DNA from: Gnetum montanum
Taxonomy: Eukaryota; Plantae; Gnetophyta
Assembly (NCBI GenBank): GCA_015680685.1
Contig: MNCI01001941.1
Location: 259,206-323,205 of the forward strand
DNA: 64,000 nucleotides
Direction of reading: 5' to 3'
Below the pieces are notes generated by a model that saw nothing but the letters and a program-made list of their open reading frames with translations, was not told the origin of the DNA and searched no databases. The position numbers and the translations under genes are program-made. Each line of letters begins with the position of its first letter. Positions within the stretch are counted from its first letter, which is position 1. Shown here one piece after another: positions 1 to 26,084 of this stretch.

Positions 1-690
1 ACCCAATTACGAGACGATAAGATGTGGTAGTTTAACGTCATTTCGGACAGTGGCACGTGCGATGTCGGCCGCATTAATATCTAGATTTGCGGATTCCATT
101 TCAGGAAAGTTCTACTTAAATCTGATACCAAGTCGGTGATCCTCGCGTATAAGTAAGTGGTTCTTCGATGAAAACCGGTTGCTGTCTATCGTGAATTTGA
201 ATTCGCAACTGTCGTTGAGCAAAGGAAGAGCAGAGAGTTAGGGCTTTGAATCTTGCGAAGATTTGCAAGTGTTAGGCTGTGAAGAAATTCTGAAATCGTC
301 GCAATGGCGCTGAAGACAAAGAAGAAGAACGCAAAACTGGCCAAAATCGACGAAATGCAAGCAACTCTGGACCGTGTTTCGCAGGCGTTGATCGATGTTC
401 GAGAGCCCGCGTTGTTGAACCGGTTAGTCGTTCCTTACATACTTACTTTCGTTTCTATGGCTGCTTTTCGTGGTGTATTTGCGTTTGCGTGCATGTTGAT
501 TATGAGCTATGGACCTCGGGCTAATGTGAGGGTTTGAAATGGTTGCGTTTATTGTCGTTGTCAGGGACAAACCTTGCGTTGTCGCAAGGGTTTGGGCGAT
601 TTCGGCCTGGGTGCGTTTTATTAGTTTTTTCGTGTTAGTCATGTAAATGCAAATGTATATGTTGATGTACGCTTTAGCTTTTTTATACAG

Positions 691-1380
691 CATCACGCTA
701 AAACCTATCCTGATTGTGCTAGACCTCATTGGGGTTTTATGCTGGACGAATCCCATTGTCCCCAATGTTCCTCCCCCTCACACAAGGGTGCAGGGGAAGG
801 CCATCTGGTTTCAAAAGGGGGCACTGAAGTTTCTGCAGTTTTTGCTGCATAACTTCAGCATCATTATTTGGTCTAACGTGATCAGGGATGTTGCCGGTGC
901 CATTTTGGAGCACCTATTGGCGGGGTCGTCACAAGGGATTCTGGCTTACCTGACAGACGGAGCCATCGAGACGGGTTATCCCGAGGACCAAGTGCTCAGC
1001 GCCCACGGTCTGCGGAGCTTACACTGGATCTGGGGCATGGCCCGTTTCATTTGTTATCATGCATATAACACACTGTTCGTGGCTCGTCATGTGTCGACGT
1101 ACTTCTAGAACCCACAAGGCACGGTGTACTACGCAGGCGGGTAAGCAGATTTGGCTAACTGTATTGTCTCTATTTTTGTTATAATGTCTGTTATTGATGT
1201 GAAAGGGAAGAGGAGTCTATGTGTAAAGTGTAAGTTAAGCTTACGCTGTATGGTACAGGTTTTTTATACATGACAACCAGATAATTGGCGATGGTGATAC
1301 GCTGGCCTGGGCCGAAACGGCAATAATGGCGTTTACCGCAACCAACAACGTGCGTGCTGGTGTTATCGGGCAAATTGGCC
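691..1380 (+). other. FCP1/NIF (HAD superfamily, CTD-phosphatase-like) domain, exons 2-3 of the cargo gene
   Basis: KPILIVLDLIGVL..GKAIWFQKGALKFLQFLLHNFSIIIWSN..IETGY..LRSLHWIW..YHAYNTLFVARHVSTYF*NPQGT..GDGDTL..NNVR. By eye this matches, in order, the plant FCP1-homology pattern KLLVLDLNGLL..GKAVFKRP..FLKFCFERFEVGIWSS..TETGF..LKELRKLW..YNESNTLLLDDSPYKALLNPPHT. Confidence 0.75.
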
Positions 1381-1630
1381 ATGAGATGCGTGAGTACCAC
1401 ACCCGCTATGAGCGCCCTTTTAAGAATTGTTAGGAACTCGGGTGGCTACATGAGGACTGGACCTTGGATCCACCCCTCACCGTTGAGGACGTGCAGAGGG
1501 AACTCCCGCCATTTCCGTTGCCATTTGGCCCCGGTAAAGTCGCTGCGTATTCTAATGTTGTATGTGTAGTTATGAGTCATGGACGTTATACAATGGTGTT
1601 TCTTTTTGACTTGCGTTTTATGCCTTTCAG

Positions 1631-2200
1631 TTAGGGAATCCCGGGAGATTACCCTTACAATTTCNGTGACCCCTGATGTCCCCACCAGCGAAATGATAGG
1701 CCTGGTCAACTCTTTCAGCGAGAAGGCGGATCATTTCAGCACGCGCGTGCATAACGTGCGCGTAAATTTTGACATTGATGCTCAACTCTTCTCGGACTTG
1801 TTTGGCGTCCCCTTGAGCGGCCTTCCCGTGAAAGTGAAGACCACGAGGAGCGCCATAATGCAGGAGTTTCTGCAGGAGTGGGCGAGGCTCCCTAAGGAGA
1901 CCAAGGGGTTTCCTTGTGATAAATTCGAGAATGGGGCCGCCAAGACACTTTACCCCCTTTTTCGAGCCCAGACCTTTCCCAAAACCCTCTCGCAGGCAAA
2001 GTTCTTTTCAGTAGAACAGACCCGTATCATGCAAGAGTTCCTGGAGGAGGGAGCCCGGTTTGATTGGGCAAGCCATCTTGCCAAGGGGCTGCGCAGTGAA
2101 ATGGTCAAGCTTCGGGAGAAGCTTGAGTCCCGTTTCAATGTGCATTATGCCTTTTTCATAGCTTGCCTCTGGCGGTTTGCTGAGTTTTTGGTCATTCAGA
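1631..2200 (+). other. Plant-transposon accessory domain (putative plant transposon protein / PMD-like), exon 4 of the cargo gene
   Basis: FDIDAQLFSDLFGVPLSG ... RFDWASHLAKGLRSEM ... HYAFFIACLW resembles the (I/F)..(L/F)GLP..G / (F/I)(D/N)WA..L pattern of retrotransposon extra-ORF domains. Confidence 0.5.
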
Positions 2201-4431
2201 GGAATGGGGTCTGGGTACAGCAAGACCAAGACTAGTTATCCAAACCCTGGATTGCCCACATTCTTAGCACTACCCGTGGGCAGGACCCGCCGGAGGGGAT
2301 TGGGGAGTCGTTGTCTGTAACGACTAAAGGTTTGGAGACGCCCCGAGCGCGAGGTCTCGACAATGTAGGCAGGATAATGCCTACCTACACCGGCGACGCC
2401 TCGCGAGGAAAACGTCTGGCAGAGGAAATTGTGGAACCAGCTGCTCGGCAGAAGAGGCTCCGCCTAACTGAGGCCCCTAGGGGCGATGCAAACCATTCTG
2501 TGGAGATCAAGGTACAGCGGAATAAGCCTCTGTCGGGTAAGTGTGAAAGGCTTACATATACGCAAGGATTTACTTAGATGATCTGGAATTATATGCTAAC
2601 GTATGGTGATGTAAACAGCAAAAATGACAGGGCAATTGACCCTTGAGACGGGGGCAATGGTACTAAGCCATGGGGAGGGGGCCTCGATTTTGGAAGAAGA
2701 GGCCTCAGGTGTTAACACGAGCCGTGTGGAGGTTCCAGTGCGTGAGGCAATCCCAGCTGCTAGCGAGAGCTGCGTACAGACTGGGGTGCGTGAGGAGGCA
2801 CCAGCTACTGGAACTAGTGACGCACAGACTCCAGTGCATGAAAGGGAAGCAGATAGGGAAGATGACGAAATCGCCACTGTCGCCAGAAGAGGTAATGAGT
2901 GCGTTAGCGTGTTTAAAAAAATACGTTAATGGAGGGAATGTCTAACCAAGTTACGCTATAGGGGAAGAAGATGTCTGAACGTCTGCTGCTGTCAGCAAAA
3001 TGTGGAAAGACTTCCCCGATAAATTTGCCTTCATGGAAGGCGTCGTCAGCGACATGATCGAGCGTCTGGAACGCATTGAACCTGGCGCTGGTAAGCTAAC
3101 GAAGTTACGACATAATGTTTCGATAATGTGTCATCCGTATTGATGTTTGTTTTCTGTCAGGAGCACACCTCCGATGGGATCCCGCGGAGCCCCCACCTGA
3201 TGGGGCAGTCGTGCCACGCCACATTTATGAGGAAATGCGTAAATGTGCATTACGCTCGACACGCTCCGCATGGGAAAGTAGAAACGTGAATGAAAACCTA
3301 TAGAAGAAGCTGCAACGGTCGGAGGGGAAGATTGAATCTTTGACCAAGGAGGTCGAGGATTTGAGGGCGCGGTACGAGTTCCTAGAGGCGCGTATGACGG
3401 GGGATGAAGACTGGCGTACCGCTGTTATTGATCACTCTCGTTATTGAACAACGATCAAGAACAACGTACAGACCAGCCAGGCGTTAATAGAGCAGAGGAT
3501 GAAAATCGAGCTGCTAGCTCAGAAAAGTCGGGACTGGAGGGACTACTGCGCCAGCGTACAGGAATGGGGGCAGACGGAGAAAGACCACAAGCATGTATAT
3601 AAAAGGCAAAGCGCTGCTTATAGACGGCATTACCGTGAGTCTGCCATTAAAGCTCGATCCCTGGAGGTTTTTGTGGACACCATCAGAGCGTCCGAAGCAT
3701 TCAAGAAGTTCGAAGAGCAGGTGACCGTAACTGCGTCCCCAGAGAGAGCGATGGTTTTCCCTGGGAATCAGGCTTCGATCCCTACTTTCTTCCCAGATCC
3801 ACCCTCCTGGAGTAGCGTGGAGAAAGGGAAGGTGAAAGCTGGGGCGGCTTCAGGCGAAGATGTGTGGCCAGACCTGACAGAGGACGAGATCATGCGGCGT
3901 TTGTGGGCTGGTTTGGACAAGCTTCCCTTTGCTGCGGAAGCTGGGCCGTCGTGAGTAAGTTTACGCATGGCTTAGTTGGCAAATTTTCTTTGACTAGCAT
4001 CGTTTATTCTAATTTTGTGTTATTTGGTTTCAGGTACCAGAAGGAGGTAGAGAGAGTACACCAGCTGAAGGGCTGGGAGAGAAAGCAGTGGAAGCAGAGT
4101 TGGAATGAAACGATGGAGAGCGTCTTCCTGTGGAGCCCAGATCAGAGCGAGAGCCTCATGAAGAGGCAATCTTTCGTGAAGGGATAATTCCCAGAAACGA
4201 TGGCCCACTGGAGGATGACCTTTTAGGGTTGGATTCGGAGTTGAGAGATATGGGTGATAGTGGCAGTAAGGGGAATGTGTAATACGAAAAATTTTGTTAA
4301 TGTTGACTAGAAAGGCTTGTTATAAAACTTGACGGATGTATTGAATTCCAATTACATATATATATTTTTTTGTTTCATTGATGGAATACAAGTGCGACTG
4401 TTGAAAAGTTCGTTTAGGTAATAATGATTTA

Positions 4432-4682
4432 ATTCCTAGTTTAAGGCCATTGCGGGCCTGATGCGTAAAGTAAAATAAGCGTGAATGGTGATTGTAAATG
4501 ACTCCGGATGGCTAGTTTAAGGCCATTGCGGGCCAGCGTAGGAATTTGCGTAAATAAGCTACTAGTTTAAGGCCGTTGAGGCCAGCGTATGAATTTGCGT
4601 AAATAAGCTACTAGTTTAAGGCCATTGCGGGCCAAATGAGCTACTAGTTTAAGGCCATTGCGGGCCAGCATATGAATTTGTA
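4432..4682. repeat. Short tandem array with core CTAGTTTAAGGCCATTGCGGGCC (5 copies, variable spacing)
   Basis: Core visible at ~4436, 4512, 4562, 4611 and 4644, between the protease end and the 3' end of the cargo gene. Confidence 0.9.
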
Positions 4683-4864
4683 ATAAAAAAAATGTAACCC
4701 TGGATAAATGCGTAAGAGAATGAGAGCGTAGCTAACGCGAGTACGATAAAGCACGCAACAGGTGAAAAGCGTAAACCCAAAAGCAAATATAGCGTAAAAG
4801 CATATTGAAATAATAAAAAAAAAGCTACTAAATGAGGAGTGTGCTAACTTACATGAGAATAGTG

Positions 4865-5500
4865 TTACACGCAAAAGACCATTGTTCGACCATCAATACG
4901 CAATTGTTTCTTAATGGCCTTTACGTTAAGCGCTGCGTAAGGGCGAGGAGGCTTATGGTTTGACTCCTCTACGCTGTCATCCGGAAATGGCAGGTCAGCC
5001 CAGGCTAGACCGTCGGCATTGTTGTCGTTCTGTTTAGGGGCTTGGAGATAAGACTGATCGTCAATCGCTTCGATCTCTGAACCCCGTTCTTCTTCGATGT
5101 TGTTAACGGTCCTGGGGGTGACCTCGTCGCCGCGTATGATAACCTCCCCTCCGGCGTAGGGGAGGTGTATCTCTTGATGTATCGGTGATGAGACTGCCCT
5201 CAGCTGGGCTAACCACGACCTCCCTAAGATTAAGTTGAAGCCAGGCATCTCCTCGATGACTAAGAATGTGGCTTCTGTTGGGAATTGATCCCCCACCACA
5301 AACTCAATACGCACCGTCCCCTTGACTTGCACCCGTGCTCCGTTGAACGATTTCACGCAAGCTATCGTCGTGGGAGTGATCTGGTCGACCAGTCCCAACC
5401 TATCCACGATGGAATAGGGAACGACATTGGCAGCTGCACCATCATCCACGTGTACCCTCCGGATCTAGTACTGGCCGACCCGAATGGTAATGAACATGGG
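4865..5500 (-). pseudogene. Retrotransposon aspartic protease of element A
   Basis: IRRVHVDDGAAANVVP...FLVIEEMPGFNLILGRSWL...SSPIHQEI. It is in frame with the gag C-terminus across a TAG at 5465-5467. Confidence 0.9.
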
Positions 5501-8445
5501 CTCTGTCGTTACTTGACCTTTCTCCGGATCATCTCTGACAGACTCGTCCAGGAAGGTCAACGAGGTGGGCTTGGGTTGTTCAGCTTCAGAAGGAAACATG
5601 ATAGCGTGTATCGCTTCTTCTTCTGCCGGCAGGCTGGCATCCACTGATATGGACATCAACATGTGTACCATAGCCTCGTAGTGTTCTCGAGAAGTCATCA
5701 GTAGGTCGTACAGGCTCAGTGTTGTATTCTTTTGTTTGAGAGCTTGTTTGACCTGCGTGAATGCATCGAGGAGGTCCTTCTCCCGGCAGGGTTGTTTATC
5801 CCCCTTGTCCTCCTCCATTCGGCCCAAAAGACGGATCTCTCGAGGCAGAGCGGTGTCAGTGGGAGGGTTGTTCTTTTTTCTGCCAAGAGAAGGTGGCTGC
5901 GTTTCTGTCCCTTTAGCCTGCTTTTGGGGCATAGACATAGGGACAGAGGCTAGGGGCCTGGGCTTAGGGAAGCCGAGCATAGGGTGGTGTTTTGTTGCGT
6001 TAACTACGTTCTCCTCCTTTTTCTTGGGAGGCAATGGCTGGTGGTGCTGGCTAGAGGTCTGCCCTTGCATGAGAGGAGCAGCCTGTGGTTTTGGCACCCT
6101 AATAATGAAGGGCGCTCTCGGCATGGGCGCGAATGAAGCCGCGGCTTGGGTTGACTGAGGGCGCGCTTGGGAAGGTGCCCTTATGATGAACGGTGGCCGT
6201 GAGACCCCACTNNNNNNNNNNNNNNNNNNNNNNNNNNNNNNNNNNNNNNNNNNNNNNNNNNNNNNNNNNNNNNNNNNNNNNNNNNNNNNNNNNNNNNNNN
6301 NNNNNNNNNNNNNNNNNNNNNNNNNNNNNNNNNNNNNNNNNNNNNNNNNNNNNNNNNNNNNNNNNNNNNNNNNNNNNNNNNNNNNNNNNNNNNNNNNNNN
6401 NNNNNNNNNNNNNNNNNNNNNNNNNNNNNNNNNNNNNNNNNNNNNNNNNNNNNNNNNNNNNNNNNNNNNNNNNNNNNNNNNNNNNNNNNNNNNNNNNNNN
6501 NNNNNNNNNNNNNNNNNNNNNNNNNNNNNNNNNNNNNNNNNNNNNNNNNNNNNNNNNNNNNNNNNNNNNNNNNNNNNNNNNNNNNNNNNNNNNNNNNNNN
6601 NNNNNNNNNNNNNNNNNNNNNNNNNNNNNNNNNNNNNNNNNNNNNNNNNNNNNNNNNNNNTTGTCTTTGGCTTTGTTGTGTGTGTTTTTGTAGGCGACAT
6701 ATGCCGGGTCTTTGCTGGCCTCCGCAGCATCTTGGATGCTTCGGACCTGGGTGAAGGCATGATGTATATTGCCGAGGAAAAGGTAATACAGCTTAGACTT
6801 AATGAAGTCGTTGACTGCTCCCTTGAATATAGCCAGTAGATGGGAGTCTGCGATCGGGTCGCGGATCTCATTCAAGGTAGCATTCCAACGCTGTATGAAC
6901 TTTTGGACTGGCTCAAGCGGGTCTTGTTTCACCCCCATAAGCTGTTTCAACGTGACTTCCAGTTTCAGGTTGTATTTGAAACGGGTCACAAATTGAGTCA
7001 GCAGCTCTTCCAAGGTTGAAATGGAAGAGCATGGGAGGGCTCTATACCAGTCTAAAACCTTCCCCGTCAAAGACATCGCGAAGACTCGGATCAAAGTGTG
7101 CGGCCACTGTTGTAACAACAAAGATTCAGATCTGAAGGTGGCTAAATGGGTGTTGGGATCCCCCTCTCCATTATACTTGGTAAAGTGAGGGAGAGACATC
7201 CCTGGTGGCAACGACAGTACGGGGACTGCTGGATTGATCGGATCATCCTGATAGAACCCTACAGATCTGAATAGTATCAGATCCAACAGTCTTAAGGCGT
7301 CGAACCTCCTCGGTAAGCATCTGGATAAGCTGGAAAGCTTGATCCAGACCTGTTAACGGAGGTGTCTGTGCAGCAGGGACAGGAGGTTGGACTGGGAGGG
7401 CAACCCTAGGAAACTGAAATGCTGGGGGTGGTTGGCTAACCGCTGGTGGAGCAGGGATTCCTGCCAGCTGGGGGGCCTGCAAAGATCACCATCCACCAGC
7501 CTGAGACGAGAGGTTAACTCCTGCCTGCTGCACAAGATAATGATAAGTATATTGAGGAAACACCTGCGAAGATTGTGCTGGAGGTGCGACCGAAGGCTGT
7601 GCACCGTACACCGCAGACGGGTGGTGTTGCGTAGCCGGGTTGATCCATTGACTTGTTGCAGGATATTGCATAAAGGTCTGCTGTGGTATGGTTGTGGTAT
7701 TTTGCTGAGTTGGTGGGGGCGGGAATATTTGCGCTGAACGAGTTGTCGGTACAGTGTGAGCCTGCACCTAAGGGACGAAATGGGGCGCGGCAGTTGCTGG
7801 GACTACCGCCGGAATACTCATTACCTGTTGTGACGGACCTGCCCTCGCGTTATGGTGCGGTTGTTGCAACCCAGACGGCTGTACGTTGACCTGCGGAAGG
7901 ACAGGGATTTGCATCTGGGCCATCGTGGCTAAGTCCAGAGAGGTTGCCTCTCTGTTGAAAGGGAACAACGGATTTACGTACACGTGGGGAGTCAGAGTAT
8001 GGAACGAATGTTCCGACAGGGCCACGAATTCGTCCTCTGCCTCTTCCTCATGCTGGGGCTCTACCCCGAGTTGCGAAGTCTGGCCCCTGGCCATGACCAA
8101 CTGTGCGATAAGCTCGTGTTGGTGTTCGGTTAAGGGGATTATGTCGTAGGCCATCGGCTTAAAATCATAACCCCCTCGGTGGAGCACCTCAAAGTTTCGC
8201 TTCGCCTCCAGCTCGGCTCGGCTAAGAGCCAGCCTCTCCTGGATCTTGACGCATATGAAATTGTATTCTTTAGGGGTTATAACCATGAAGATAGGCTCTT
8301 TCCCCTGAAGCCTTAATGAACGGCGCAATGGTCCCTGAGGTCCCGTTGCACTAGGAGCTGGTCTTGTGACCACCGTAGGGTTCACAGGCGCAACACCCAT
8401 ATCAGTAGTGCCCATGGCGGTTGTGTTTGAGTAAAAAGAATCCAT
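5501..8445 (-). pseudogene. gag: gag of element A (P/Q-rich N-terminus, Retrotrans_gag core), interrupted by an N gap
   Basis: ORFs 8445-7768, 7767-7486 and 7482-7243 share one frame broken by stops. A frameshift near 7264 leads into FYQDDP..FTKYNGEGDPNTHL..FAMSLTGKVLDWY..QFVTRF..VKQDPLEPVQKFIQRW. Confidence 0.9.
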
Positions 8446-8672
8446 TTGACCGATGAAATCGAGCGTAACTGGTAACCGGATCTAAAAGAAAAAGGCTGGC
8501 AACAAAAAGCACAAAAAGGCTTTCTACCCTGTAGGATTTCAAGGAAACCGTCCTTGCGACCGATCTATACCACACGATTGACCGTAGACTTCCTTAGAGG
8601 TATTACGTCTATGGTTTCAGGGTATGGATCACTACCAGGGCTACCCGAAATATCCGGATCAGAGCCTGAAGG

Positions 8673-8689
8673 CCCTCCTTCTAGCGCTA
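8673..8689 (-). promoter_or_regulatory. Primer-binding site complementary to the 3' end of plant tRNA-Asn(GUU) (element A)
   Basis: Minus strand reads TAGCGCTAGAAGGAGGG (TGG mutated to TAG), 6 nt after an LTR-terminal ..TTACA. Confidence 0.85.
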
Positions 8690-8695
8690 GAAAAC

Positions 8696-10340
8696 TGTAA
8701 CGACGGAAAACGTTGGCAGCTAGAAATACCGACCGAAGTTTCGGCGTACACAGTTTTAGCCACGGATCCACGTGAGGGCTATGCTGGAGAAACGAATCCN
8801 NNNNNNNNNNNNNNNNNNNNNNNNGTAGCTTCAAGATCTGCGCTTTGACTTAAAAGTGTATATTTCGTATGAAAAATTGCACTGGGGAATCCCCGATTAC
8901 AAGATGTGAAACAAGCACAAAAGAACAAGCAAAACGGTCTAAACAGAAGTCCGATCTACCTCGTGGGCTAAGCTGAAATGCAAGGCGGGCCAAGCTTTGA
9001 CGTCTATCGACCAATTGTTTCTGATTGATAGAGTCTTTTCAGCAGAACGATTACTCCTGTCATCGGTGCTCAAGGCGAACTGTACTCTGCTTCAGCTGTA
9101 AGGTGATGATGTCAACGATTGCCAAAGCGCTGTTCTCTGTATCTCTGCTCCAAAGTGCTAAATGCTCTGGTGCTCAGAAAATATGCTTTTGCTTCTCTGA
9201 TTTGCCCCCCTTTGTATCTTTATCGACTGAGATATTTATAGGCTGTGACGCTTTGTGAAAAAGGTGCAACCCTGATGACATGGGTCCCGGCTATTGCGGG
9301 TCCTGTTGGCATGATCATTTTAAGTCAGATTGTGACTACGCACAACACGCTCGTTTGCGTGTTGTGCGCGTGAAGAGCAGGCATGCGCTGAGCAGCTTAA
9401 TTGCTTTTAAGCTGTATTACACTCATTCGCATTGTATTGCGTGTATGAGCGTAATCCGGTGTAGAAAAGCAATAGGCTCAAAATTGTTTTACACTCGCTA
9501 CGCAACTGCGCGTAACAAAGCGGAAACAAATGTGTAACTTACGCTCACTACACAGCTGCGAGTGATGAAGCGTAAACAATGTATGACTTACGCTCACTAC
9601 GCAGCTGTGCGTGATGAAGCGTAAACAATGCCTAGCTTACGCTCACTACGCAGCTGTGCGTGATGAAGCGTAAACAATGTATGACTTATGCTCACTACGC
9701 AGCTGTGCGTGATGAAGCGTAAACAATGCCTAGCTTACGCTCACTACGCAGCTATGCGTGATGAAGCGTAAACAATGTATGACTTACGCTCACTACGCAG
9801 CTGTGCGTGATGAAGCGTAAACAATGCCTAGCTTTAATGATGACATACGCAATGATACGCACCGCTGCGTAACAAGCGTAAAGGCAAGTTATCCATGCGC
9901 CGCGAGGAAAAGCATCAAACTATTATGCTTCTCTGGCCCTTTGACTATCTTGGAGCTTATTACGCTCATTACGCTGCCGTGCGTAATGGAGCGTAAACTT
10001 GTCCTTGAACGAAAAGACTTAGCAAGATACACAAGAAATCGCATATTACGCTGCTTAGGCTTCTCTCTGTGCTGGAGCAACTATCCTTCTGATGTCGGGC
10101 TACGTCGAAACACTTGTTGCGCTGAGCGTCATTGTGCTATGTCGCGTGACAGTGTGATCAGCAGAAGTATAGAAAGATTAGAGATTTGTACAGGAGGCCG
10201 TGGACTTGATGCTATGCACCTCCTGGTGTTGCTCTGTCTTCTCCCCCCCTGAAAGGCTGAGATGTGCCCTTGCTTGAATTGCGAATCTTTGCCTGAGGCC
10301 GACTCACAATTTTTAACGGTGTTTCAGGAGCCACCTATAC
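8696..10340 (-). repeat. 5' LTR of element A (outer boundary approximate)
   Basis: Terminal CA next to the PBS, TATA box CCTATAAATA on the minus strand at ~9233-9242, and an abrupt composition change at ~10340. Confidence 0.65.
9538..9831. repeat. 6 x 49-bp tandem repeat in LTR A, alternating two variants (98-bp higher-order unit)
   Basis: CTTACGCTCACTACGCAGCTGTGCGTGATGAAGCGTAAACAATG followed alternately by TATGA or CCTAG; units start at 9538, 9587, 9636, 9685, 9734 and 9783. Confidence 0.95.
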
Positions 10341-12705: not shown

Positions 12706-14170
12706 TTGGTGTTGGTTCATGCATTTTTGCAAATCAACTATGCTACCACTAGACCTTGCATACATGGCCTCCAGCCAAGACATAGTTTATATCTATGACT
12801 TGAAAGACCTTGTAGTCATAGAACAAGGATACTCACTATGACAAAAGGATAAGAACCTAGACTTCACGGTCATTAATGAGGAGTTCTACAACTTCCTTTG
12901 CACTAAGATGCAAGTTGGTTTACTTATACCATAGTCTAAATTTGACACTAAGTTTCAATTCAAAATAATACACTGGGATGGGAAAGAGTACATCCCATCA
13001 CCATATGACAAAATTCCCCTCACCAATTTCTATGCACACATGCTCATACAACTAATAGATGTTGATGAGTTTAGTGATGAAATTAGAAATGAGGATTACC
13101 AAGAGGAACAAGATGAGTTCAAGGTAGATGTTACTAAAGAGTTGTAGAAGCTAAAAGCTAGTACAAATCAGATGGTCAAGGTTCTATACTTTTATCAAGA
13201 TGATCCTATAAGTCCTATAGTGTCTCAAATAACCTTACCCATAAGCATGCCCATACCAAACTTCACCAAATACAATATTGAAGGGGATGCTAATGCATAC
13301 TTGGTCACCTTCTAGTCTAAGTGTCTCTTTATGCAAGCTTGGCCACATACAATACTAAGGATTTTTCCCATGTTCCTTAAGGGAAAAGCTCTAGATTGGT
13401 ATTGAACCTTGCTTAGAGGTTCTATCTCTTCCCTTGAAGACCTAATAATCCAATTTGTCAATTGCTTTAGATATAACTTGAAGTTGAATGCTACATTGGT
13501 TCAACTAATGAAGGTGAAGTAGGGGCCACTTTAACGAATCAAAAGATTCATTCAAAGGTGGAACTCAATACATAACAAGATTCCAGAGCCTATTATTGAA
13601 ACTCATCTCTTGACCATCTACAAGGGAGTAGTAAAAGACTTTATCAAGTTAAAGCTCTACTACCTAGAGCCTTGGTCACTAAGCTAAGCCTTCTTGAAAA
13701 CTAAGAACATTGAGGAGGTAGCTGAGGCTAGTAATGATCTAGCCTATGTGGCATATAAAAACCAACACGCAAGGAGGAATAATAATAAAACTAGCAAAAA
13801 TCATACAACTTTGGCTACAGTAAAAAAAGAGTCAAAAAAAGGGGAAAGGCAGTGATCACCGCCACACAACACATCCCAAAACTCATTGTAATGATCCACT
13901 TCCTATGCCCCAAATCAACCAAGATCAAACTTTGGACAAAAGGATAGATCTAAGTACATTAGGTTTCCTATGAAGCCCTTTTAGCTTTTGGAACATTTGC
14001 TTAGAGATAATCATATACAACATAAGAAACTATCTAAGGAAGCTTATAAGAGGCATGATCAACTTTGTGACATAGCTAGAGACCCAACAATAGCTATCAA
14101 AGATGATCCAAAGCTACCAAAGTACTTCAGACTATATAGGCATTATCATTATCATCAAATGGCTGGTCAT

Positions 14171-16150
14171 TATTGTAATTAAAAAAGTTAATTGCTAGAA
14201 AATTGAAAGATCTAGCATAGCAGCCTCAACCCTGATTCCCCAGGGCCTCTAAGAAATGGGATTCAAGGTGCCCTGGATAGTATGACAGATCACCCAGGAA
14301 CTTAAGAAATGTAAGATGGGAATGGTTTTGAACATGAATGGAAACATAAATAGAAGTAACCTACTGAAAATGAAAATGTAACCAAAAGTGGCCTACTGAA
14401 AACAAAAATGGAAAATGAAATTTCATTTACATAAAATAAGTGTAAAAATGAAAATAGAAATAAAAAACATTGCACAACATGAACCAATAAATTTATAAAA
14501 TAATATAAATGAAGATTGAGTTCTTAGTGTCTAGGTTTGTGCCAAGGGCACAGGAAGCTACTTGTTGAAGCTTGAAGTTTTTTTAGAGAGTGAGAGATGC
14601 CTCCACAATTTGGTTGCTTCCCAGTTTTAGCTTATTGCAACTTTCTGTCAATTCCACTAGATTTGCTACATGGGAATGAGATTGGTATTGCACATTTGGA
14701 GCAATGGAAACCACGCAAGTGTCTCTATGCCTAGCGTAGTTCTAGTTTCTACCACCAAATGACACAACTAGGGGAAGGATGTAACGACTGCAATGGGTTT
14801 TAATGACTGCCAATGGAGATGGAAATGTGGTGGGAACTTACACTTTTAGCAGTAATGACATTTACATTGGGGGTGTGTAGACCTAGCATAGTGCTAGTTT
14901 CTACTATTGAAAATGTAGTTGAGTTACAAATGGATTTGATGGGTAATGTGAATGGCTATAAAAATGGGAAATGATATTATTGTAGAATGGTTTTGAAATG
15001 CCAAATTTCTTAGAGTTTGGAACTATTGTATGTGATGCCAATTGAGAAAATTTTAAACCTGGAAATGGTGTCAACATTGGGCTTTTATAGGTTAGGGTTT
15101 CCATTTTTGAAATTGCCATGAATTGCTGAAAAATTGGTGTTGATTATGGGTTGTAATAGCTACTATTGCTAGTGTAGTCATCCACTACTGCTAGTGTAGT
15201 TGATCAACTACTACTCAGTGTCATCAACCAACTACTGCCAATGTAGTCAACCAACTATTGCACTACTACTTAGCGTAGTTAGCCAACTACTGCCAATGTA
15301 GCTAGCCAACTATTGCTAAGGTAGTTAGCCAACTATTGCTAAGGTAGTTAGCCAACTACTGCTAGCATAGTTAGTTAACTACTACTAGCATATTCAAGCA
15401 ACTATTGTTGATGTAGTTGGTATTTGTGGTAAGTATAGAATGGAATACACCCACAAAACCCATATGTTTACTATAAATAGTAAACAGGATTTTATGACTA
15501 CATTGAAAGCTTTGAAAATGGGAAATGGAAAAGTAATGGGAAACAAAAAGATACATAGAAACTACAAAAATGGTGGAACTTGTTGGAAAGTGCCGTGCTT
15601 GTTAAAGACTACTATCTAGTCATTGTTGACTTGGGATGCATATGCTGGTTGTTGTTGGAGAATTGGCCATTCCAACAATGCCAATGTTGCTTCTTTGTCG
15701 AGTGCTAGTGATGACTATGCTGGCCATTGTAACTATTGTGGCTACTATGACTATTGTGGCCATTGAGCCTACTAAAGCTATTGAGCCTACTAACAATGGC
15801 TCCAGCATAGTTGGGGCTATATCCCTACAAAAACTCATGAAAATGCTAATTTTTAGCCATTCCAAAGGCATTTTTAGCCTTCCCAAGCCTAGATATGAAC
15901 ATGGGGTACCTATTTCTAGTTGTAAAATGAGGTAATAATAAATTTTAAAGAATTTTCAGCTCCAACATGTTGAAATTTCCAAGATTGTAGCTTATGTTCT
16001 ACATATCTTACATTTATAATGAAACTTTACCTTAAGCTGAGAAGTGGGATTTGCAACATGAATTTTGGTGGTGTTTTATTGGTCCTTCTTTATTGACGTT
16101 AGGTGGGTTGATTCGAGAGACATCGACAAAGAATATAAAACACAACTACA
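14171..16150 (-). repeat. 3' LTR of element D (~1.98 kb)
   Basis: Starts TGTAGTTGTG after a purine-rich tract ending GTGATGGACC; collinear with LTR E along its length. Confidence 0.8.
15160..15420. repeat. ~21-bp tandem array (AGCCAACTACTGCTAGCGTAGTT-like) in LTR D
   Basis: About 11 degenerate copies; counterpart at 39825-40000. Confidence 0.85.
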
Positions 16151-16429
16151 GGTCCATCACTAATGTCTTCTCTCTATGCTTGATTTAGTAGTATCAAATC
16201 ATGCTCAAGACTACTTGTGATGATGGAGTAAGACCATGATGATGAAATGGTAATGAGGTTATGAAGAAATGGTCATGAGGGCTAGCAAACCTTAGTCAAA
16301 TAGCTCAAGTTATGCACTTTTTGTTTAGAAGTGTGGTTTGCTCAATACATGTGTTTGAAGAATTGACACCTCACTCCAAGGTTTCTTTGATGACTTGGCA
16401 ATGTTCTCTTTGCCAAGCTTGACTTTGAT

Positions 16430-16730
16430 GTGATTTTTCCATTGGGTGAGGTGTGTTACACTCAAAAAAATTAGGGTTTTCCCATCAAAAAAGGTGTGTT
16501 ACACTTGATGGACTTGGCATTTTCCCAACAAATGAGATGTCTTTACATTCAAGTGTACTTGGGATTTTTCCATTGAATGAGGTGTGTTACACTCGATGGA
16601 CTTGGTGTTTAATGAGATGTGTTACATTCAAGTGGACTTGGGATTTTCTCATTGAACAAAGTGTGCTATGCTCGATGGACTTAGCATTTTCCCACTAAAT
16701 GAGATGCATTATATTCATGTGGACTTGGAG
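16430..16730. repeat. ~43-bp tandem array in the 3' UTR of D
   Basis: Repeats of GTGTGTTACACTCGATGGACTTGG..TTTTCCCA..AATGAG; counterpart at 38660-38880. Confidence 0.85.
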
Positions 16731-19339
16731 GTAAATCATAGATTAACATTGCTACTCAAGGTATAGGAAGGTTATATTTAGGCTATGGGGTTGGCTTCAT
16801 AGGAAACGATATGGAACAATCACTGTTGAACATATTCAAGAAGTCTTGCTCATTGAGTTTATGTGGTAACTTGTTTTTGTGATGAGTTATGCCCTTGTGA
16901 AGGCTTCCGTATTCATCCTGCAAACATAACTCCAAGAGAACTAGAAGACCAGAGAGAGAAATCATGTTGTTACAATGGGATACATAAGACCATGAAGGAT
17001 GGTTCAGGCAATTTGGCTAGCCAAGGTCACATGTTACTAGTTGAAGACCTTGGTAGGCTGCATTGTCAATTTAAGGCCTCAGCCAGCTATAGTGCTAATT
17101 TAGGGTCATAGTGAACCATAGAGATTAGGCTTATTTGTTGATGTTGTCAATAACATGGCTACTACGGTTTACATGTAATATGATTTCAGAGAGGAATGAT
17201 TGACTAGATTTGCCAGCTTGTTCCAATCCATGTCTACTATTCAGTAGGCCCTATTGTCATAGGTGTTTGTGACCAAGAAAGGTCCTTCTCAGTTGTCTGA
17301 GAATTTGTTCGCATGCTCACGAACAACCATAAGGACTAGGTCTTCTTCCTTGATTGTGTGATTGCCCAAGTTGTGATGGTGTTGCCCTTTCTACCTCTCT
17401 TAGTAATGCTCAATGTGAGTAAGTGTTTGCACCCACTACCCCTCCACTAAGTCTAGGTCCTTGGTTTGTATCTCCTTGTTTTTGTCATTATTGATGAAGT
17501 TTGATAAGGCCACTCAGAGTGATGGTACCTGCAATTCAAGAGGTAAAATAGCTTTAGAACCATAAACAAGGCTATAAGAGGTCATGCTTGTTGCGGTATG
17601 GTATGTCATTCTATAGGCCCATAGTGCATGGACATGTCATTCATGCCATTTGTGCCTACTGTTATTGAGCATCTTCTTGAGTAAGTTGATGATGGCCTTG
17701 TTGCTTACTTTGGCTTGTCCATTGGACTGAGGGTAATAAGGTGATGAGAAAGAGTGCTTAATGCCTAGGTTGTGATAAAAATTTTCTATTTCTTAGTTAT
17801 TAAACTATGGTTAATTATCTATGACTATGGTCATAGGTATATCAAAATGAGCTACTATGTTGTCCAAGATGAACCTAGAAACTTGTTGGAACACCACAAA
17901 ATTTTGTATGTTATAGCCAATTTCCATCATGTAGCTTTCACCCCATGAAACTTGAGGCAAAAATTGATTATAAATATGAATATTGCAACCCATGGAGGAC
18001 AATCTCACATATCCCATACTTTTAGGGCTCAAAAATTCCTCATAAGAGATCAAAGCTTTACTTCCCAAGTAAAAAAACGTCACCTAGTATCTATATTTGG
18101 GCTTGGGGGTGGGGGGGCTGGTTTTAAAATGCCTTTTAAAATGCCAAAAATGGAAATTTCATGGGCTTTAGGGGGTGTATATACTTTTCTCCATTGGAAA
18201 CATCTATGGGGGAGGTTTCTGCTTAGTTTGGAAACTTTTTCCCCCAACATAGAAACTACATGCCCCTAGCGTGGAAGCCATAAAAGCTAGATTTCAACAC
18301 TCCATGCACTCCAACATTGACCAACCACTCTAGCAAGGATGGAAAAAGGCTTAACGTGGAAGATTCATCTCCAACGTGGAAGGTGTGCCCTTGTTACTAT
18401 TTAGAGTAAACAGAATGATGATGGGGTGGAAGGCACTTACTATATATGGTAACCTCCCAAATTTGGGCATCCATCTTACCTGTATGAGGTAGAAATTTGT
18501 AGCAAAATTATAGCCAATTTGCAGCCATTATGTTGCCAAATTACAACCATTCACAACCCTATTCATGACCAAAAACCTATAAAAACCAACCACAAACACC
18601 ATTTATAGGTTCTAGACTTTTGATGTTCAACATTTTTTGTAGCTTAATAGTTTGGCAATTCCATAACCCTAACATTAGTTCTCATAATTTTTACAATTCC
18701 ACACTTGGGCATTTTCAAGCACTTAAGAGCTCTTACAATATCCCATGTTTGCATTCTCTTGAAACCCAACATGGAAGCATTATAGCCTTAATACTATTGA
18801 ACTTTTGGTGTCAATGCTACATTTCTAGGACTTCCAGCCTCTAGCGTGTAGCAATCTAGTACCAAATTTCTCACTTTTCTCATCCCCCAGTAGTGATCAA
18901 CGTTGCAAATCTGAGGTTGCAATAAAGGAGGTTCAATATCATTGGGAGTGGCAAGAAATTTGTATTATGGAGTTGAACACATAAGATTCAATGAACCTTG
19001 AATCCCTGCTTATGTGAATCCCCCTATTGCCCTCTCATGCACACTTTATACATAATCTCTTAACTCTCCTTTATTGTATTCTTTGTAAAATAAAATTTAT
19101 AGTTTTGATTTGTGTTGAAATTATGCTTGTCATTTATTCTTAGTGCATTTATATTACTTCAATATGAAATCATATTATTTATCTTGTTTTGCATTTCATA
19201 AGTCCTTGGGTGATCTATTGGACCATCTAGGGTACCTTGAATTTCATTTTTTGGAGGCCCTAGGCATTCAAGTCTGAGGTTGTTGCACTAGATTCATCGA
19301 TCTTCCAGTAATCAAATTTTCTAGTCACAATAGTTTTCT

Positions 19340-20179: not shown

Positions 20180-23000
20180 CAAAATAGACATGTCTTTCCA
20201 ATAGTCCACCAAGTTACCCTTTACCCTTACTAATAAAGGTCCTTGCCAATAAGCCATGAGTGTCTATGATCCCAAAGAACCTACCATCATCAAGTGTAGG
20301 CAATATTTAAGGATCATAGGGGGAAGTTCTAACTTTTTGGTCATAAATGAAGACTGTTATTATTACATTTTCATCAAAATGTAGGTTGGCCTTATGATTT
20401 CACATGTGGAGGTAGAGGCAAAAAGGAAGTTTGAACTCATGCATCGAGATGGAAAAGAGTATGTCCCTTCCTCGTATGAACAAATATCCCTCAATGATAT
20501 CTATGCTAGCATCCTAGCCTAATTGATTGCAATGGAGAAGAAGGATGACAAGCATAGCTTGAAGAAATAATAAGAAGAGGAGGATGAATTTAGGGTAGAA
20601 TTTGAGCCTGAAAACATTCTGGGAGGATTGTTCCAACAAACGTCCCTTAAGGTTGCAATGCCTTCCTCTAATACTTTTGTTTTCTCCATGGGCATGGTGT
20701 CACCATCTTCCACTCCTACCATGGTTGGTTCCATAGCAATCATAGCTGCTCATCAAGCTTAAAAAATGCCACAATTGATTGTCTATAACTCATCAATGTC
20801 ATTCACTACACAGATTCGATCTATACAACCATCGTTGGTGGCTTTCACTACCACAAACCCACTAATTACCTATGTGGGACCTACCATGGGATCCTGAGCA
20901 ACTCAAAAATTACACATCCATTTATCTTATTTGTGCCTTAGGTACTAGCACAAACATTCTTTTCCTTGTTTGGCCTACAAGCTATGACCATAACAAAACC
21001 TCTTTCTTCCATCCTACAACCCATAACGAGGCCACATGAATCACAATAGACGTCACAACCATATGTGCAAATTGCATAGCCAACAAGGCCATTACAGGGC
21101 CTAGATCAAGCCTTGTAGATGATCCATGACTTGATGGAGGAGTTGAAGAGGATAAAAATCTCAACTTTAGAAGCTATTAAGATTATGGACTTCGACTAGG
21201 ATAATCACATCAATCATGTAGTCCCATCCTTGACACTTCCTTTTGGTGTTCTTATTCCTTAGTTTAGCAAATATAATGGAGAAGGTGATCCCAATGCTCA
21301 TCTTATTACCTTTAGATCTAAATGCTTACTCTTATAGCCATGGCCTCATACGATCATGAAGATTTTCCCCATGTTGTTGACTAGGAAAGCACTTGATAGT
21401 ACCATGCATTACCTAGGGAATCCATATTCTCTCTAGAGTACTTAATTGCCCAGTTTGTCAACCACTTCAAGTGTAACTTGAGCCTGATACCATGCTTGAC
21501 CAACTCATGAAGGTCAAGCAAGGATCCTTAGAACCCATGCAGAAATTCATTCAATAGTGGAATGGATTGTTGAATGCAATACTAGAGCCTATAGCTAAAG
21601 CCCATATTTTAGCCATATTCAAAGGTATAGTAAATGACTTTATCAAGTCTAAGCTCTATTATCTTGATCCATAGTCCCTCAACTAGGCATTTTCTCAAAC
21701 CAAGAATATAGAGGATGCTGTGGAGGCTAGTCATGATCTAGCCTACATAGCATATAAAAATTAGCATACATGGAGATACAAAGAGAAGAACAAACAAAGA
21801 AATATGTTCGTAGCAACTATGACCAAAGAGGCAAAGACCACAAACAAGGAGCCAAGGGCCAACCCACCCATAGCCCCCACTAATGACCATAGTAACCAGC
21901 CATCAACCTCTAGAGCCAGTGCATTAACAACAACTAGATCTAATGTCAAAAGAAAGGATAGGTCCAAATACACTACATGGCCATTAAAAGCATCAAATTT
22001 GTTAGAACAACTTTTGAAAAGTGGGTGTATTCAATACAAATATATGTTGGAAGCTTTCCAAAAGAAGCGTGATAGGCTATGTGAAATAGCCAAAGACCCC
22101 ACTAGAGGAATGAAATATGATCCACAACTACCTAGGTACTTCATGCTAGATTGCTTTTGCCACTATCTCCAACTACTTGGTCATGACATAGACTTTTGCC
22201 TTACATTGAAGGATGACCTGTAGAGGATGATTGATAGGGGAGAGCTATTCTTAGATTTTTTCAACCTAGTCTAGCCATAAAATCAGTCTATGCAGGTCTA
22301 CAAGGACCCATTGAATGCTAATGACAACCCTTACAACCCTTACAAGGACCCATTAAAAGTAACTAGGGCTCCTATGTTCATAACCATATGGGTAGGATAG
22401 TTTAAAGTGCATTGGGTGCATGTTGATGTTGGAGCTACAACTAACATCATCCCATGCACTATTGTGTAATGCTTGGGCCTAATTGAGCAAATACAGCCTA
22501 CATCAACAACTGTCCTCAAGTATTTTAATAGATTAAGGGTTGTTTTCAAGGGGTCTATCTCCTTAGATTTTGTGGTAGGAGAGTAGTTTCCCATAACCAT
22601 TAATTTCTAGGTGGTGGAGGAAACACTAGGGCTCAACATTATCTTAGGAAGACCTTAGTTGGCTTAATGATGAGCTGTATCCTCACCCATCCATCAAGAA
22701 ATTCATTTTCCTTACAAGGGAGGTGAAATCATCATTCATGGTGATAGCATGATTCCCCTAGCTGTTAACAACGTGAACATAGAGAAAGGGTCTAAAGTGG
22801 AGCTTTAGGAGGAAACTCCAAGTCATGTAGTCTATCAACCAAGAGAGATTAACAACCCAATGATGAAAAAAATATGCAATAGGATGCATTATGGGATGAA
22901 CTCCCTTTTAACATCATTAGTTAAGGTGATGGTGAATACAAATTTGTGCAAAGTAGAACTTACTCATTCCCTAATCTTTCAAAGATTAGCAAGAATATGC
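20180..23000 (+). pseudogene. gag: gag-protease of element C, decayed
   Basis: FSKYNGEGDPNAHL; QKFIQ*WN; FCHYLQLLGHDIDFC knuckle; VHVDVGATTNIIP; NIILGRP; SSPIHQEIH. Confidence 0.9.
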
Positions 23001-23239: not shown

Positions 23240-23760
23240 TGGCCTACCATGGCCTTAAAATGGCAAAGGTAATCACACAACATGGCCCACTATGGCCTTA
23301 ACTAGCAAAATTATAGTCTGCTAAGACTTTAAACTGGTGTCATAGTTCGCTAAGACTTTAAACTAGAAACATGGCATACTATGGCCTTAAACTGGAAAAA
23401 TTATAGCATGGTAAGACTCTAAATTGGTGTTGTAGTCTGCTAAGACTTTAAACTGGCAACATGGCCTACTATGACCTTAAATTGGCATTAAGGCTTGCTA
23501 TGGCCTTAAATTGGCAAAATTATAGTTTGCTAAGACTCTAAACTGGAGATGAAATCTACTAAGGCTCTAAACTGGTGATGCAGTCCATTAGGACTCTAAA
23601 CTGACATCATAGTTTGCTAAGACTCTAAACTAGTGATGTAGTCTACTAGGACTCTAAACTAGGATCGTAGTCCACTAAGACTCTAAACTGGTGATGTAGG
23701 TTGCTAAGATTTTAAATTGGTGACATGGCTGGCCATGGCCTTAAATTGGCAACACAATAT
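23240..23760 (+). repeat. ~29-bp tandem array (GCTAAGACTCTAAACTGG / ATGGCCTTAAACTGG), about 17 copies
   Basis: Directly visible; same motif as the reverse complement of 4432-4682. Confidence 0.9.
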
Positions 23761-24119
23761 AATCTGTGCTTGCCATGGACTAAAACTAGAGAACATAATT
23801 TTTATTATTATACTTCTTTTTTTTAGCCTATTATCACATTGATTAGCCATTTAATGTTATAACCAAAACATCAACCTAGCCATTCACAATGTTCACAACA
23901 TTTATAGCGTTTCCTATAACTATAGATATATATAGCCAAAAATAAAACCAAAATTTTAAATTTAAATTTAAAGTATTCATAACATACATAGCCATGGCCA
24001 CACTGTGTGGCAAAAATATATAAAAAAAGAATAATATCCATTTATAACATAGTCTTGGCTAACATTATCCATCAACATGAAAATAAAAGGAATATAGCCA
24101 ACAAGCTAAAAATGAGTAG

Positions 24120-24440
24120 ATGGAGGATGCTAAGGGGCATTCAGAGGAGGAAGTGGTGGATCATCTCCACCCTCACTGCTAGGGTTTCCAGTGTCTCTTG
24201 ATGCCTAAAATACAATAACACATAGCTAGTTAGTGATCAATAGCCAAAATCATAACTTAAAACAAAAACTAAAACATAAAATGCATCTAACTTGTGGGGA
24301 TTCTAGCTCCATGACTTCTGCGGGTAGATATGGAAGGCCATTCTCTAAACGATGGAGGATTTGGTCCTCCATCATATTGACCCAATCAATATCCCCTAGA
24401 TACCATAGTGAGACCTTCCCCAAGGGCATGTCAGGAAGTT
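24120..24440 (-). pseudogene. Last two exons of the cargo-gene homologue in element C
   Basis: GKVSLWYLGDIDWVNMMEDQILHRLENGLPYLP aligns with A's GKVKAGAASGEDVWPDLTEDEIMRRLWAGLDKLP. A phase-0 GT..AG intron at 24291-24205 is followed by ASRDTGNPSSEGGDDPP. Confidence 0.75.
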
Positions 24441-26084
24441 GAGTATTGGCCTTGGAATGGCTAATATAGCATAAAATGCTCACCAACTCCACAATAATGA
24501 GGATGATCTTCAAGTGGATCTTGCATGAAGCAAAGCAAAAGCATTATGACCAATTAGAATTTATTAATAAATTTGGAAGAAACATCTAGTTTGAGGTTAA
24601 ATTAACCTCTGTAAAAAGCTCTAAGGTGTTTATCTAAGTTGGCTTAAGAAATTCTAGAAAAAGCATAATTACAACTTTTCATAGCCTTTAACTTCATAGC
24701 CAAAATATTATAGCCAAAGATTTATAGGCAGAAGTAAGCCTTAGATTAAACCATGCATAAGATTATAAAAAGTATTAAAACTTATATAGCCATGAAAAAG
24801 CCTGCTAAGAATAGCAGAAGCCTTTACTTTTCTTAGAAAAAAAATTTAAACATAAGTTTTACATATTTAGCAATCATGAAAGTTGACAAGAGTAATCTCT
24901 ACATCCATCCCCAAAGGGGTAAAGTACTATGACCATGATACAACCATAACCAAAAATTTATGAAAAATTCATCTAAGCTTCAATTTTAGTGATTCCACCA
25001 TGGAAAGAATCTTGAAATCATGAACCTTCTAGCTAAAGCCATTGCAACCAAGAAAACATAACCGTTTTTATGTAAGACAGACAAAACTAGCAAAAATCGT
25101 AGCCGTCATCATTAACCCCTTTTTTCACATGGTTGATAAAAAATTCACCAAAATTTCGTTTGAGCTTCAAAAAGAGTGATTCCACCACTGTTTAAAAGCT
25201 TGAATTGAGTCCTATACACCCACACTTAAAAAAATTAAAAAATCATTACTGTTTATGCAAAAAAAAAATTCATCAATTTAGATAAAAATCTGAAAATGGG
25301 ACAAACCCCCTTTGGACATAGGTCTAATGAAAAATTCATTAAAAATTTGTTTCAAGTCCAATTTACCCCTATTGGAAAGTTGAAGCCAAGACCTACCTAG
25401 CCATAGCAGCAAAAAAAAAAAAAAAAAACAAAGAAGGAATAGCCAAGACCCTTGCCATTTTCTTAGAGAAAATTCATGAATTTACATGAAAATCTAAAAA
25501 TGGCATAAAAAATCTAATTGCATGACCTTAGAAAAACATCAATAACTTAATGGCTTCAAAGCCAAATTGAACAAGACAATAGCCATTGGAAAGCTTAAAC
25601 ATAGGGCTACAAATCCATAACATTGTATTTGAATAATATGTTACCATTTTCTTAAGGAAAAATACATAATGTTGTTTCCTTTTTTCATGTAAAAAGCTAA
25701 AAAGCTAAAACCCAACTTAACATAGTCATAAAAACGTAGCAAAAATAGCCAAAATGAGCAATACCCATGGGAGAAAATAGCAAGATAAGGGGGGTAAGAT
25801 TTTGTTACAATTAAATTTTGATGAAAATTGAAGCCTAGATTTGAGAAAAATGACCCTACCCCCAAATTTTGGGAAAAAATCATGAAATTTGCAAGCTGAA
25901 TTTCAAAAATTGAATCTACTAAGGCAAAAACAATGAAATGACTAGAGATCCATGTAGAAATGACAAAAATAAGAGGTGGTATTTCCTCAAAATTTTGTTT
26001 TACCCACTTTATCAGTGTAGATTTAAGAAAAATGACCCATAAAACACAAGAAATATATGAAAAATAGCTAGAAACAAAAGTAAA

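Follow-up and report, generated by a model that had tools for sequence, protein, structure and literature searches.

An intron-rich gene antisense to gag and protease

We analysed a window of 64,000 nucleotides (nt) from Gnetum montanum (contig MNCI01001941.1 of assembly GCA_015680685.1, positions 259,206 to 323,205), the left end of which carries an intron-rich accessory gene (304-4282, + strand) that converges on the gag and protease genes of a long terminal repeat (LTR) retrotransposon, here called element A. The gene is real, element-borne and antisense, and it is dead in this copy (copy A). The protease open reading frame (ORF) of element A lies at 4865-5449 (-) and contains an Asp_protease_2 match at 5213-5446 (E=0.0044, under the cut-off). 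The gag gene at 6672-7352 (-) is recognised by Retrotrans_gag (E=2.5e-6, over the cut-off) and adjoins a gap of 449 Ns (6212-6660), while a conserved ORF of no known family, ORF1, is found upstream of gag at 7768-8445 (-).

The + strand of 304-4282 consists of open stretches in rotating frames with short AT-rich gaps between them. When the spliced model was rebuilt from the sequence, eight exons joined without a frameshift into 3195 nt (1064 codons and a stop), in agreement with a first-pass annotation that had proposed eight GT-AG-bounded exons in a single frame of ~1064 amino acids (aa). All exons are on the + strand. Exon 1 (304-422) supplies the start codon and a basic N-terminus with a K-rich patch, and ends in ccg followed by the donor GTTAGT. 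Exon 2 (691-1140) holds the probable NIF/FCP1-like first half of a HAD domain, of which exon 3 (1259-1533) is the candidate second half. Exon 4 (1631-2536) comprises a central stretch without a known family (1633-2232), interrupted by a single N at 1665, and then a basic patch, RQKRLR. Exon 5 (2619-2891) encodes an acidic low-complexity linker and is followed by the short exon 6 (2962-3090). Exon 7 (3161-3954) contains a coiled-coil-like segment (3304-3444) and a conserved C-terminal block (3724-3951), and exon 8 (4034-4282) encodes an acidic tail and closes the model.

All seven introns are bounded by GT and AG. Their donors read, in order, GTTAGT, GTAAGC, GTAAAG, GTAAGT, GTAATG, GTAAGC and GTAAGT, every acceptor is CAG or TAG, and four of the six GTAAG sites on the + strand of the gene region coincide with donors of the model. 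The introns are 70-268 nt long and have a GC content of 33-42%, compared with 53% for the exons. Each intron length equals 1 modulo 3, and hence every one of them must be spliced out for the frame to hold. Beneath the gene, the - strand has only short ORFs (up to 113 aa). For intron 7, an alternative donor (GTGAGT at 3951) would lead to a shorter last exon that ends at 4187 and has no stops; the phase-0 donor at 3955 is a better fit to the two further copies of the gene described below.

The joined frame is interrupted by eight internal stops, all TAG or TGA, at 1106-1108 (exon 2), 1431-1433 (exon 3), 2233-2235 (exon 4), 2976-2978 (exon 6), 3301, 3445 and 3952 (exon 7) and 4106-4108 (exon 8). 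The other two frames of the joined model contain 45 and 61 stops, and shuffling its letters 5000 times gave 48.6 +/- 6.6 stops with a minimum of 28. A frame with eight stops where 48.6 are expected was therefore formerly coding, and copy A is now a pseudogene that yields no protein.

RNA reads came from four runs under the same species label, of each of which 2-26% was read; matching at 88% likeness recovered 33-213 reads. These reads derive from paralogs that are 88-95% alike to copy A. They occur at a low level across the region and on both mates' strands, with unclear library types. No read in these parts of the four runs was at least 99% alike to copy A. The paralog reads lack the stop at 3301-3303, and they differ from copy A mostly by A>G and T>C; copy A has therefore lost G and C, as happens in methylated repeats. 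They part from copy A after 1664 and near 3187-3192, where the lengths differ by 6 and 24 nt, each divisible by three. A large assembly gap at the N inside exon 4 (1665) was ruled out, since the paralog reads differ there by 6 nt only. No reads over the seven junctions were listed in this partial reading of the runs, a result that speaks neither for nor against splicing. In intron 1, reads of all four runs pile up on ~60 nt (541-606) and continue into various unrelated sequences on both sides; this segment is a short repeat occurring in other transcripts.

The model could in principle be an artefact of picking GT and AG sites that join unrelated open stretches, as the sites were picked by eye, eight stops interrupt the frame and junction reads are missing. 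However, one frame has six times fewer stops than expected across 3.2 kb, the donors conform well to the consensus and use four of the six regional GTAAG sites, and AT-rich introns alternate with GC-rich exons. In addition, the protein is conserved in the same frame, together with an intron, in diverged copies, and the paralog length differences keep the frame. We regard such an artefact as barely credible.

Linkage of the gene to the retrotransposon family

The window contains two further copies of the arrangement. Element B has its gag and protease genes on the + strand (ORF1 from 56375, gag at 57232-58335, protease at 58954-59775), and copy B of the accessory gene (63592-63984, -), which comprises the end of exon 7 and is truncated by the end of the window, is convergent with them. 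Element C is likewise on the + strand (ORF1 from 20298, gag at 21128-22184, protease at 22356-22802). Copy C of the accessory gene (24292-24513, -) is a remnant of the exon 7 C-terminal block and is located after the C protease and before the first of two pol copies (30614-34180, +). Thus, the convergence with gag and protease claimed for element A holds, and it recurs in B and C. The gag and protease proteins are only ~52% identical between copies, which indicates that the arrangement has outlasted a long divergence.

Exon 7 matches copy B with 36% identity (E=1.8e-21), whereas its match to copy C is weak, yet at the homologous place. The C-terminal block is the best conserved part of the protein among the copies, with 43% (B) and 33% (C) identity to copy A. 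Directly after this block, A, B and C all have the GT donor of intron 7 in phase 0, and in copy C there is then an AG, after which a short last exon stays open in the same phase. A check of splice sites among the copies therefore found the position and phase of this donor kept in all three.

The three copies have decayed to different degrees, and in each of them the gene resembles its neighbours. For the accessory gene, the CpG observed/expected ratio is 0.85 in A, 0.28 in B and 0.10 in C, and for gag-protease it is 0.71, 0.36 and 0.12 in the same order. This similarity within each copy indicates that the gene and gag-protease are of equal age, as if inserted together.

A 15-nt motif, CTAGTTTAAGGCCAT, with its close variants, matches 28 times in the window where 2.8 matches are expected. 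In element A it forms an array at 4436-4658 (+), in the space between the accessory gene and the protease, whose 3' ends face each other. Arrays occupy the same relative place in copy C (23249-23789, -) and copy B (62773-63044, mostly -), and all three are in the orientation of the accessory gene. These arrays could be regulatory sites, protein-binding sites or a satellite seed. Looser copies of the motif occur before the two pol copies (30315-30416 and 34315-34329, both -), after the integrase of pol copy 2 (38242-38314, -) and just left of the gene start in A (27-41, +).

Taken together, the shared arrangement, the intron, the CpG age and the motif array make a chance neighbour or a host gene unlikely, and support that the gene is part of the retrotransposon family. 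The linkage to gag-protease in three diverged copies and the matched CpG decay thereby support the earlier proposal of an element-encoded gene. The rival explanation is a NIF-family host gene or pseudogene beside truncated retrotransposon pieces, with the repeated adjacency arising by segmental duplication of a genomic block. Seven introns are what an ordinary plant gene would have, neither an LTR pair nor a reverse transcriptase (RT) can be attributed to element A, and the window is a nest of broken elements. Against this, the arrangement is kept in three copies with different flanks and 50-65% protein divergence, the CpG decay of gene and gag-protease is matched copy by copy, and the motif array between gene and protease is conserved in all three.

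Searches for relatives point the same way. A full HMMER scan of 1.84 billion representative proteins with exon 4 found no orthologue, the only match being a spurious one to a tandem-repeat protein. Exon 2, gag and the last part of exon 7 found no relatives in a word-indexed search of proteins, and neither did exons 2 and 4 in two scans of metagenome contigs. Orthologues would be expected for a conserved host gene, and the lack of any for exons 2, 4 and 7 in these searches counts for an element-borne gene. We consider a host gene very unlikely.

Alternatively, a different mobile element, for example a DNA transposon with a gene of the plant mobile domain (PMD) or DUF1985 type, may have repeatedly inserted into this family or been hit by it. 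It is usual for DNA transposons to carry genes with introns. In the language-model search, exon 4 has hypothetical proteins of plants as its neighbours, a part of which contain DUF1985 or PMD, and both families are also found in DNA transposons; PMD in Mutator-like elements is mentioned in PMC9289625. In contrast, the gene has the same distance and orientation to the protease in three copies, with the same motif array between, the ages match, and neither a transposase nor terminal inverted repeats were seen around 1-4700. This alternative is also unlikely, if a little less so than a host gene, and membership of the retrotransposon family remains the preferred reading.

Two features lie near copy B. 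A perfect 92-nt inverted repeat (63238-63329 and 63410-63501, with an 80-nt loop) is located where its last intron and exon would be expected; as one arm is bounded exactly by single Ns (63409 and 63502), it looks like an assembly artefact and not a miniature inverted-repeat transposable element. Between the B protease and the B accessory gene, an ORF at 60454-60870 (-) weakly resembles RPS2-like leucine-rich repeats (E=0.01, under the cut-off) and may be a fragment of a resistance-gene-like sequence.

Class and layout of the host element

Two pol copies stand in tandem on the + strand at 30527-34176 and 34560-38245. They share 75% DNA identity, and each follows a similar pre-RT segment. Pol copy 2 encodes, in this order, RVT_1 (RT), an RVT_3-type extra RNase H and rve (integrase). 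Angiosperm Tat lineages are described with the same order of RT, extra RNase H and integrase (PMC6317226, PMC4408406). A Tat-like Ty3/gypsy family is thus supported by the pol copies of the window; the pol side of element A itself lies outside it. The tandem pair itself represents nested or recombined elements or an old tandem duplication.

The accessory remnant of copy C is downstream of the protease and upstream of both pol copies, and so the gene seems to occupy the gap between protease and RT rather than the space between pol and the 3' LTR, its place in Retand. In element A a GTAAGT occurs 12 nt past the protease stop, and conserved AG sites precede both pol copies. The GTAAGT is a candidate donor for an Ogre-like intron across the gap; the post-protease DNA of A, B and C is too diverged for an alignment that would bear on this donor.

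ORF1 is conserved in four element copies, at 7768-8445 (-), 56261-56641 (+), 20298-20612 (+) and 12830-13141 (+), with 30-56% aa identity. It has no Pfam match and does not carry the PMD, which in Ogre is encoded by the ORF at the corresponding place. The fourth of these copies belongs to an element of which ORF1 and a truncated gag are left (12830-14200). Its truncated gag abuts 14173-17887 (+), which is a 3.7-kb inverted copy of 37481-41004 (-) with 70-73% identity and includes the integrase end and the post-integrase region. Upstream of the ORF1 of element A, in a presumed LTR or leader, is a 49/98-nt tandem repeat (9489-9834, 6.9 copies, 87-92% matches). Rfam had no match in positions 1-10000 of the window.

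The DNA of the window is AT-rich and plant-like, with a GC content of 31-39% over most of its length and 47-52% in the left 10 kb. In element A, CpG is nearly undepleted, with observed/expected ratios of 0.71-0.85 at ~50% GC, and the older copies and the background have 0.10-0.36 at 31-42% GC. Element A and the older copies form a steep decay series of one family inside 64 kb.

A probable NIF/FCP1-like start of the protein

Part of exon 2 (710-916, +) matches the Pfam family NIF (PF03031) with E=0.0068 and 16.5 bits, over profile positions 2-74 of 160; the Pfam gathering cut-off for this family is 21.8 bits. In an ESM Atlas language-model search with exon 2, NIF was the family of 29 of the 30 nearest named clusters, the best of which scored 0.94 with 199 of 256 features shared. 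According to the Atlas, chance hits or distant relatives attain that level just once or twice in 10, and shuffled proteins get to a score of 0.9 there 4-10 times in 100. As the Pfam profile and the language model name one family, we consider it highly probable that exon 2 is NIF-like.

The NIF match begins exactly at a strand motif, D-x-x-x-V, with which exon 2 starts, and passes through a hydrophobic strand ending in Ser; HAD motifs I and II are expected at these places. Motif I of HAD and NIF proteins reads D-x-D-x-(T/V), with the first Asp as the nucleophile and the second as the general acid. At the corresponding position in copy A (722-736, +) the sequence is D-L-I-G-V. The first Asp and the Val are kept, and the second Asp is replaced by Ile, so that copy A lacks the motif with both Asp; the replacement may be ancestral or private to copy A. 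As the general acid is gone, an active phosphatase acting on RNA polymerase II at its carboxy-terminal domain (CTD) is unlikely. A binding or pseudo-enzyme role is more plausible for such a protein. The NIF/FCP1/SCP family (PF03031) also includes non-catalytic members such as TIM50. The loss of the catalytic Asp resembles that in the inactive members; the similarity from motif I to motif II is sub-threshold and the second half of the domain is unrecognised. Motifs II to IV of these enzymes are a Ser/Thr, a Lys and an acidic DD/DN pair; besides the Ser in the matched stretch, a ..HDN.. motif in exon 3 was seen by eye only. Thus, of the FCP1/CTD-phosphatase-like domain proposed by the first-pass annotation, a NIF-like start stands, at sub-threshold level, by both Pfam and ESM Atlas, whereas phosphatase activity is unlikely given the lost Asp. 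The start of the accessory protein is probably NIF/FCP1-like and catalytically incomplete.

The accessory gene may also be real and element-borne while its likeness to NIF/FCP1 is a chance match and the N-terminal fold is unrelated. The score below the cut-off over less than half of the profile, the absence of matches among solved structures and in NCBIfam (where exon 2 had none), the lack of a usable structural model and the rate at which shuffled proteins reach 0.9 in ESM Atlas would all fit such a coincidence. On the other hand, two methods agree on one family among about 24,700, the number of shared features is rare for chance hits or distant relatives, and the match spans the expected places of motifs I and II. 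A chance match is therefore doubtful, although it is the least improbable of the alternatives that we weighed, and we retain a NIF-like start as the preferred reading.

The remainder of the predicted protein

For exon 4 we considered the families PMD (PF10536), Transposase_28 (PF04195) and DUF1985 (PF09331). The ESM Atlas gave leads below 0.9 only, to plant hypothetical proteins; DUF1985 occurred in 13% of one cluster, and PMD appeared at rank 20 with a score of 0.86. The transposon-type domain claimed earlier has no Pfam or NCBIfam match, and with these scores a PMD-like nature of exon 4 is a lead and not a finding. For the coiled coil that had also been proposed, 3304-3444 in exon 7 has only weak Pfam matches to several coiled-coil families (E about 0.01). 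The basic patches of exon 1 (K-rich) and exon 4 (RQKRLR) could be nuclear localisation signals.

Comparison with known extra genes of Tat elements

Tat elements of other plants carry extra ORFs with which the present gene can be compared (Ustyantsev et al. 2015, PMC4408406; Neumann et al. 2019, PMC6317226; Steinbauerova et al. 2011 as cited there). PMD occurs in gymnosperm lineage III, and PMD with a coiled coil occurs in lineage V (antisense, 3' end) and in Ogre (sense, 5' end) (PMC4408406). Among Ogre elements 57% have PMD, and among Retand elements 23% have Transposase_28 (PMC6317226); almost every recent Retand cluster has antisense TRP28 (Transposase_28) ORFs along with tandem-repeat arrays (PMC11963269). 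These antisense PMD and PMD-coiled-coil ORFs provide a precedent for an antisense accessory gene. In both cases a Tat-type element has an extra gene, which for lineages III and V is antisense, and this gene is lineage-specific and fast-evolving; the predicted protein would, like the known ones, have a helical domain and then a coiled coil. Like the Tat extra ORFs, the present gene lies within the element and runs antisense to gag-pol, as seen in all three copies (A, B and C). In contrast, the known ORFs are found between pol and the LTR at the 3' end, or at the 5' end in sense orientation (Ogre), whereas the present gene follows directly after the protease in all three copies. Furthermore, the known ones are single ORFs with a PMD detectable by Pfam, while the present gene has seven introns, no detectable PMD and a putative NIF/FCP1-like start.

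The TRP28 ORFs of Retand and the accessory gene of Grande (Vicient 2025, PMC11963269) are likewise antisense; they have a promoter of their own and are placed in a long non-coding internal region with tandem-repeat arrays, and nuclear localisation has been shown for the Grande protein. Unlike the present gene, they are located between pol and the 3' LTR and encode TRP28, and neither introns nor a phosphatase-like domain is reported for them. Ogre (Macas and Neumann 2007 and also Steinbauerova et al. 2008, both as cited in PMC4408406) shares the protease fused to gag and apart from RT, and an ORF upstream of gag. Its gap is described as a spliced intron, and the accounts as cited there report no gene inside it, whereas the gap in the present family spans several kb and contains an antisense gene.

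If exon 4 were PMD-like, a further likeness would be the MAIN/MAIL1-PP7L complex and the PMD-PP7 fusions MAIL3 and VvMAIL2.2, in which a mobile-element domain is combined with a phosphatase-like domain (Nicolau et al. 2020, PMC7156037). The PMD-phosphatase pairing of Arabidopsis acts on gene expression and on the silencing of transposable elements (TEs), and PMD-PP7 fusions arose twice (PMC7156037). However, PP7 is a PPP-family metallophosphatase and NIF belongs to the HAD family, with unrelated folds, and the PP7 modules are host genes while the present gene is element-borne.

When 121 angiosperm genomes were screened, 15 extra domains came to light in LTR elements; the text names PMD, G-patch, AIR1, DUF1409, YgdH, L26, B3, ArgoL2 and 2-ODD, with NIF not named (Alvarado-Marchena et al. 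2022, PMC9289625). The orchid 2-ODD/AlkB elements described there are likewise a Tat/Ogre-related giant family with a fixed non-canonical, host-like domain, which in the orchids is an active enzyme. For a NIF, FCP1 or CTD-phosphatase domain in retrotransposons, we found nothing relevant in the open-access full-text literature. The gene is thus a variant on the known theme of Tat extra ORFs, by its domain, introns and position, and not a categorically new system; what would be new among these ORFs is a phosphatase-like domain, the presence of seven introns and the location after the protease.

Proposed role and significance

Considered as a whole, the observations are probably best explained by a fairly young, dead accessory gene that is integral to a Tat/Ogre-like Ty3/gypsy family. 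The gene lies just downstream of gag-protease on the opposite strand and, in copy C at least, seems to lie in the long gap between protease and RT. A promoter of its own would drive its transcription, on the strand opposite to the genomic RNA of the element, in which case the seven introns would never be removed from that RNA and would be copied at each retrotransposition. Its mRNA would be spliced and translated into a nuclear protein of about 1030-1060 aa. This protein would begin with a basic N-terminus, followed by a module of HAD fold that would be a pseudophosphatase or bind phosphoproteins, and then by a central helical domain perhaps comparable to PMD in the known extra ORFs of Tat elements. 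An acidic linker, a coiled coil that may serve self-association, and the conserved C-terminal block would complete it. By analogy with the PMD-coiled-coil ORFs of other Tat lineages, it may serve the element by acting on the transcription or silencing machinery of the host.

Several observations weigh against this explanation. As regards the domains, the NIF match stays under the Pfam cut-off and covers the first half of the profile only, exon 3, as the second half of the domain, has no Pfam profile match, and phmmer of exon 2 against solved structures returned noise only. The 1633-2232 stretch of exon 4 has no match in Pfam (E up to 10) or NCBIfam, and its similarity to PMD is not demonstrated. 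Single-sequence AlphaFold2 models were unusable, with a confidence (pLDDT) of 47 for exon 2 and 37 for exon 4. As regards expression, the four RNA runs gave neither a splice-junction read nor a read at least 99% alike to copy A. As regards the element, RT is not visible beside A or B, where the window ends, the copy C region, with its pol copies in tandem, is rearranged, and no copy in the window is flanked by paired direct repeats of at least 120 nt, nor was an LTR pair found, the elements being cut by the window ends or rearranged. The copy in the window supplies the anatomy and the linkage evidence, and the domain assignments are not settled by copy A alone.

A bolder version of the role would have the spliced-out gap between protease and RT encode a factor composed of a pseudophosphatase, a PMD-like DNA-binding domain and a coiled coil. 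As a retrotransposon counterpart of the host MAIN/MAIL1-PP7L complex, this factor would bind the CTAGTTTAAGGCCAT arrays found next to the gene in every copy and either shield the element from silencing or tune RNA polymerase II. We regard this as a long shot. If it were true, an LTR retrotransposon would for the first time be seen to have fixed a HAD/FCP1-type domain, and for the first time an intron-rich antisense gene would be shown to be carried along in retrotransposition.

Extra genes are common in plant retrotransposons and their function is obscure, the sole functional lead being the host PMD proteins that act with a phosphatase-like partner in TE silencing. A different phosphatase-like fold joined to such an extra gene would be a second, independent hint of phosphatase-like modules in this biology. 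With seven introns kept through RNA-mediated copying and a site in the gap between protease and RT, this gene family would offer a natural test case for the carriage and expression of antisense genes in retroelements.

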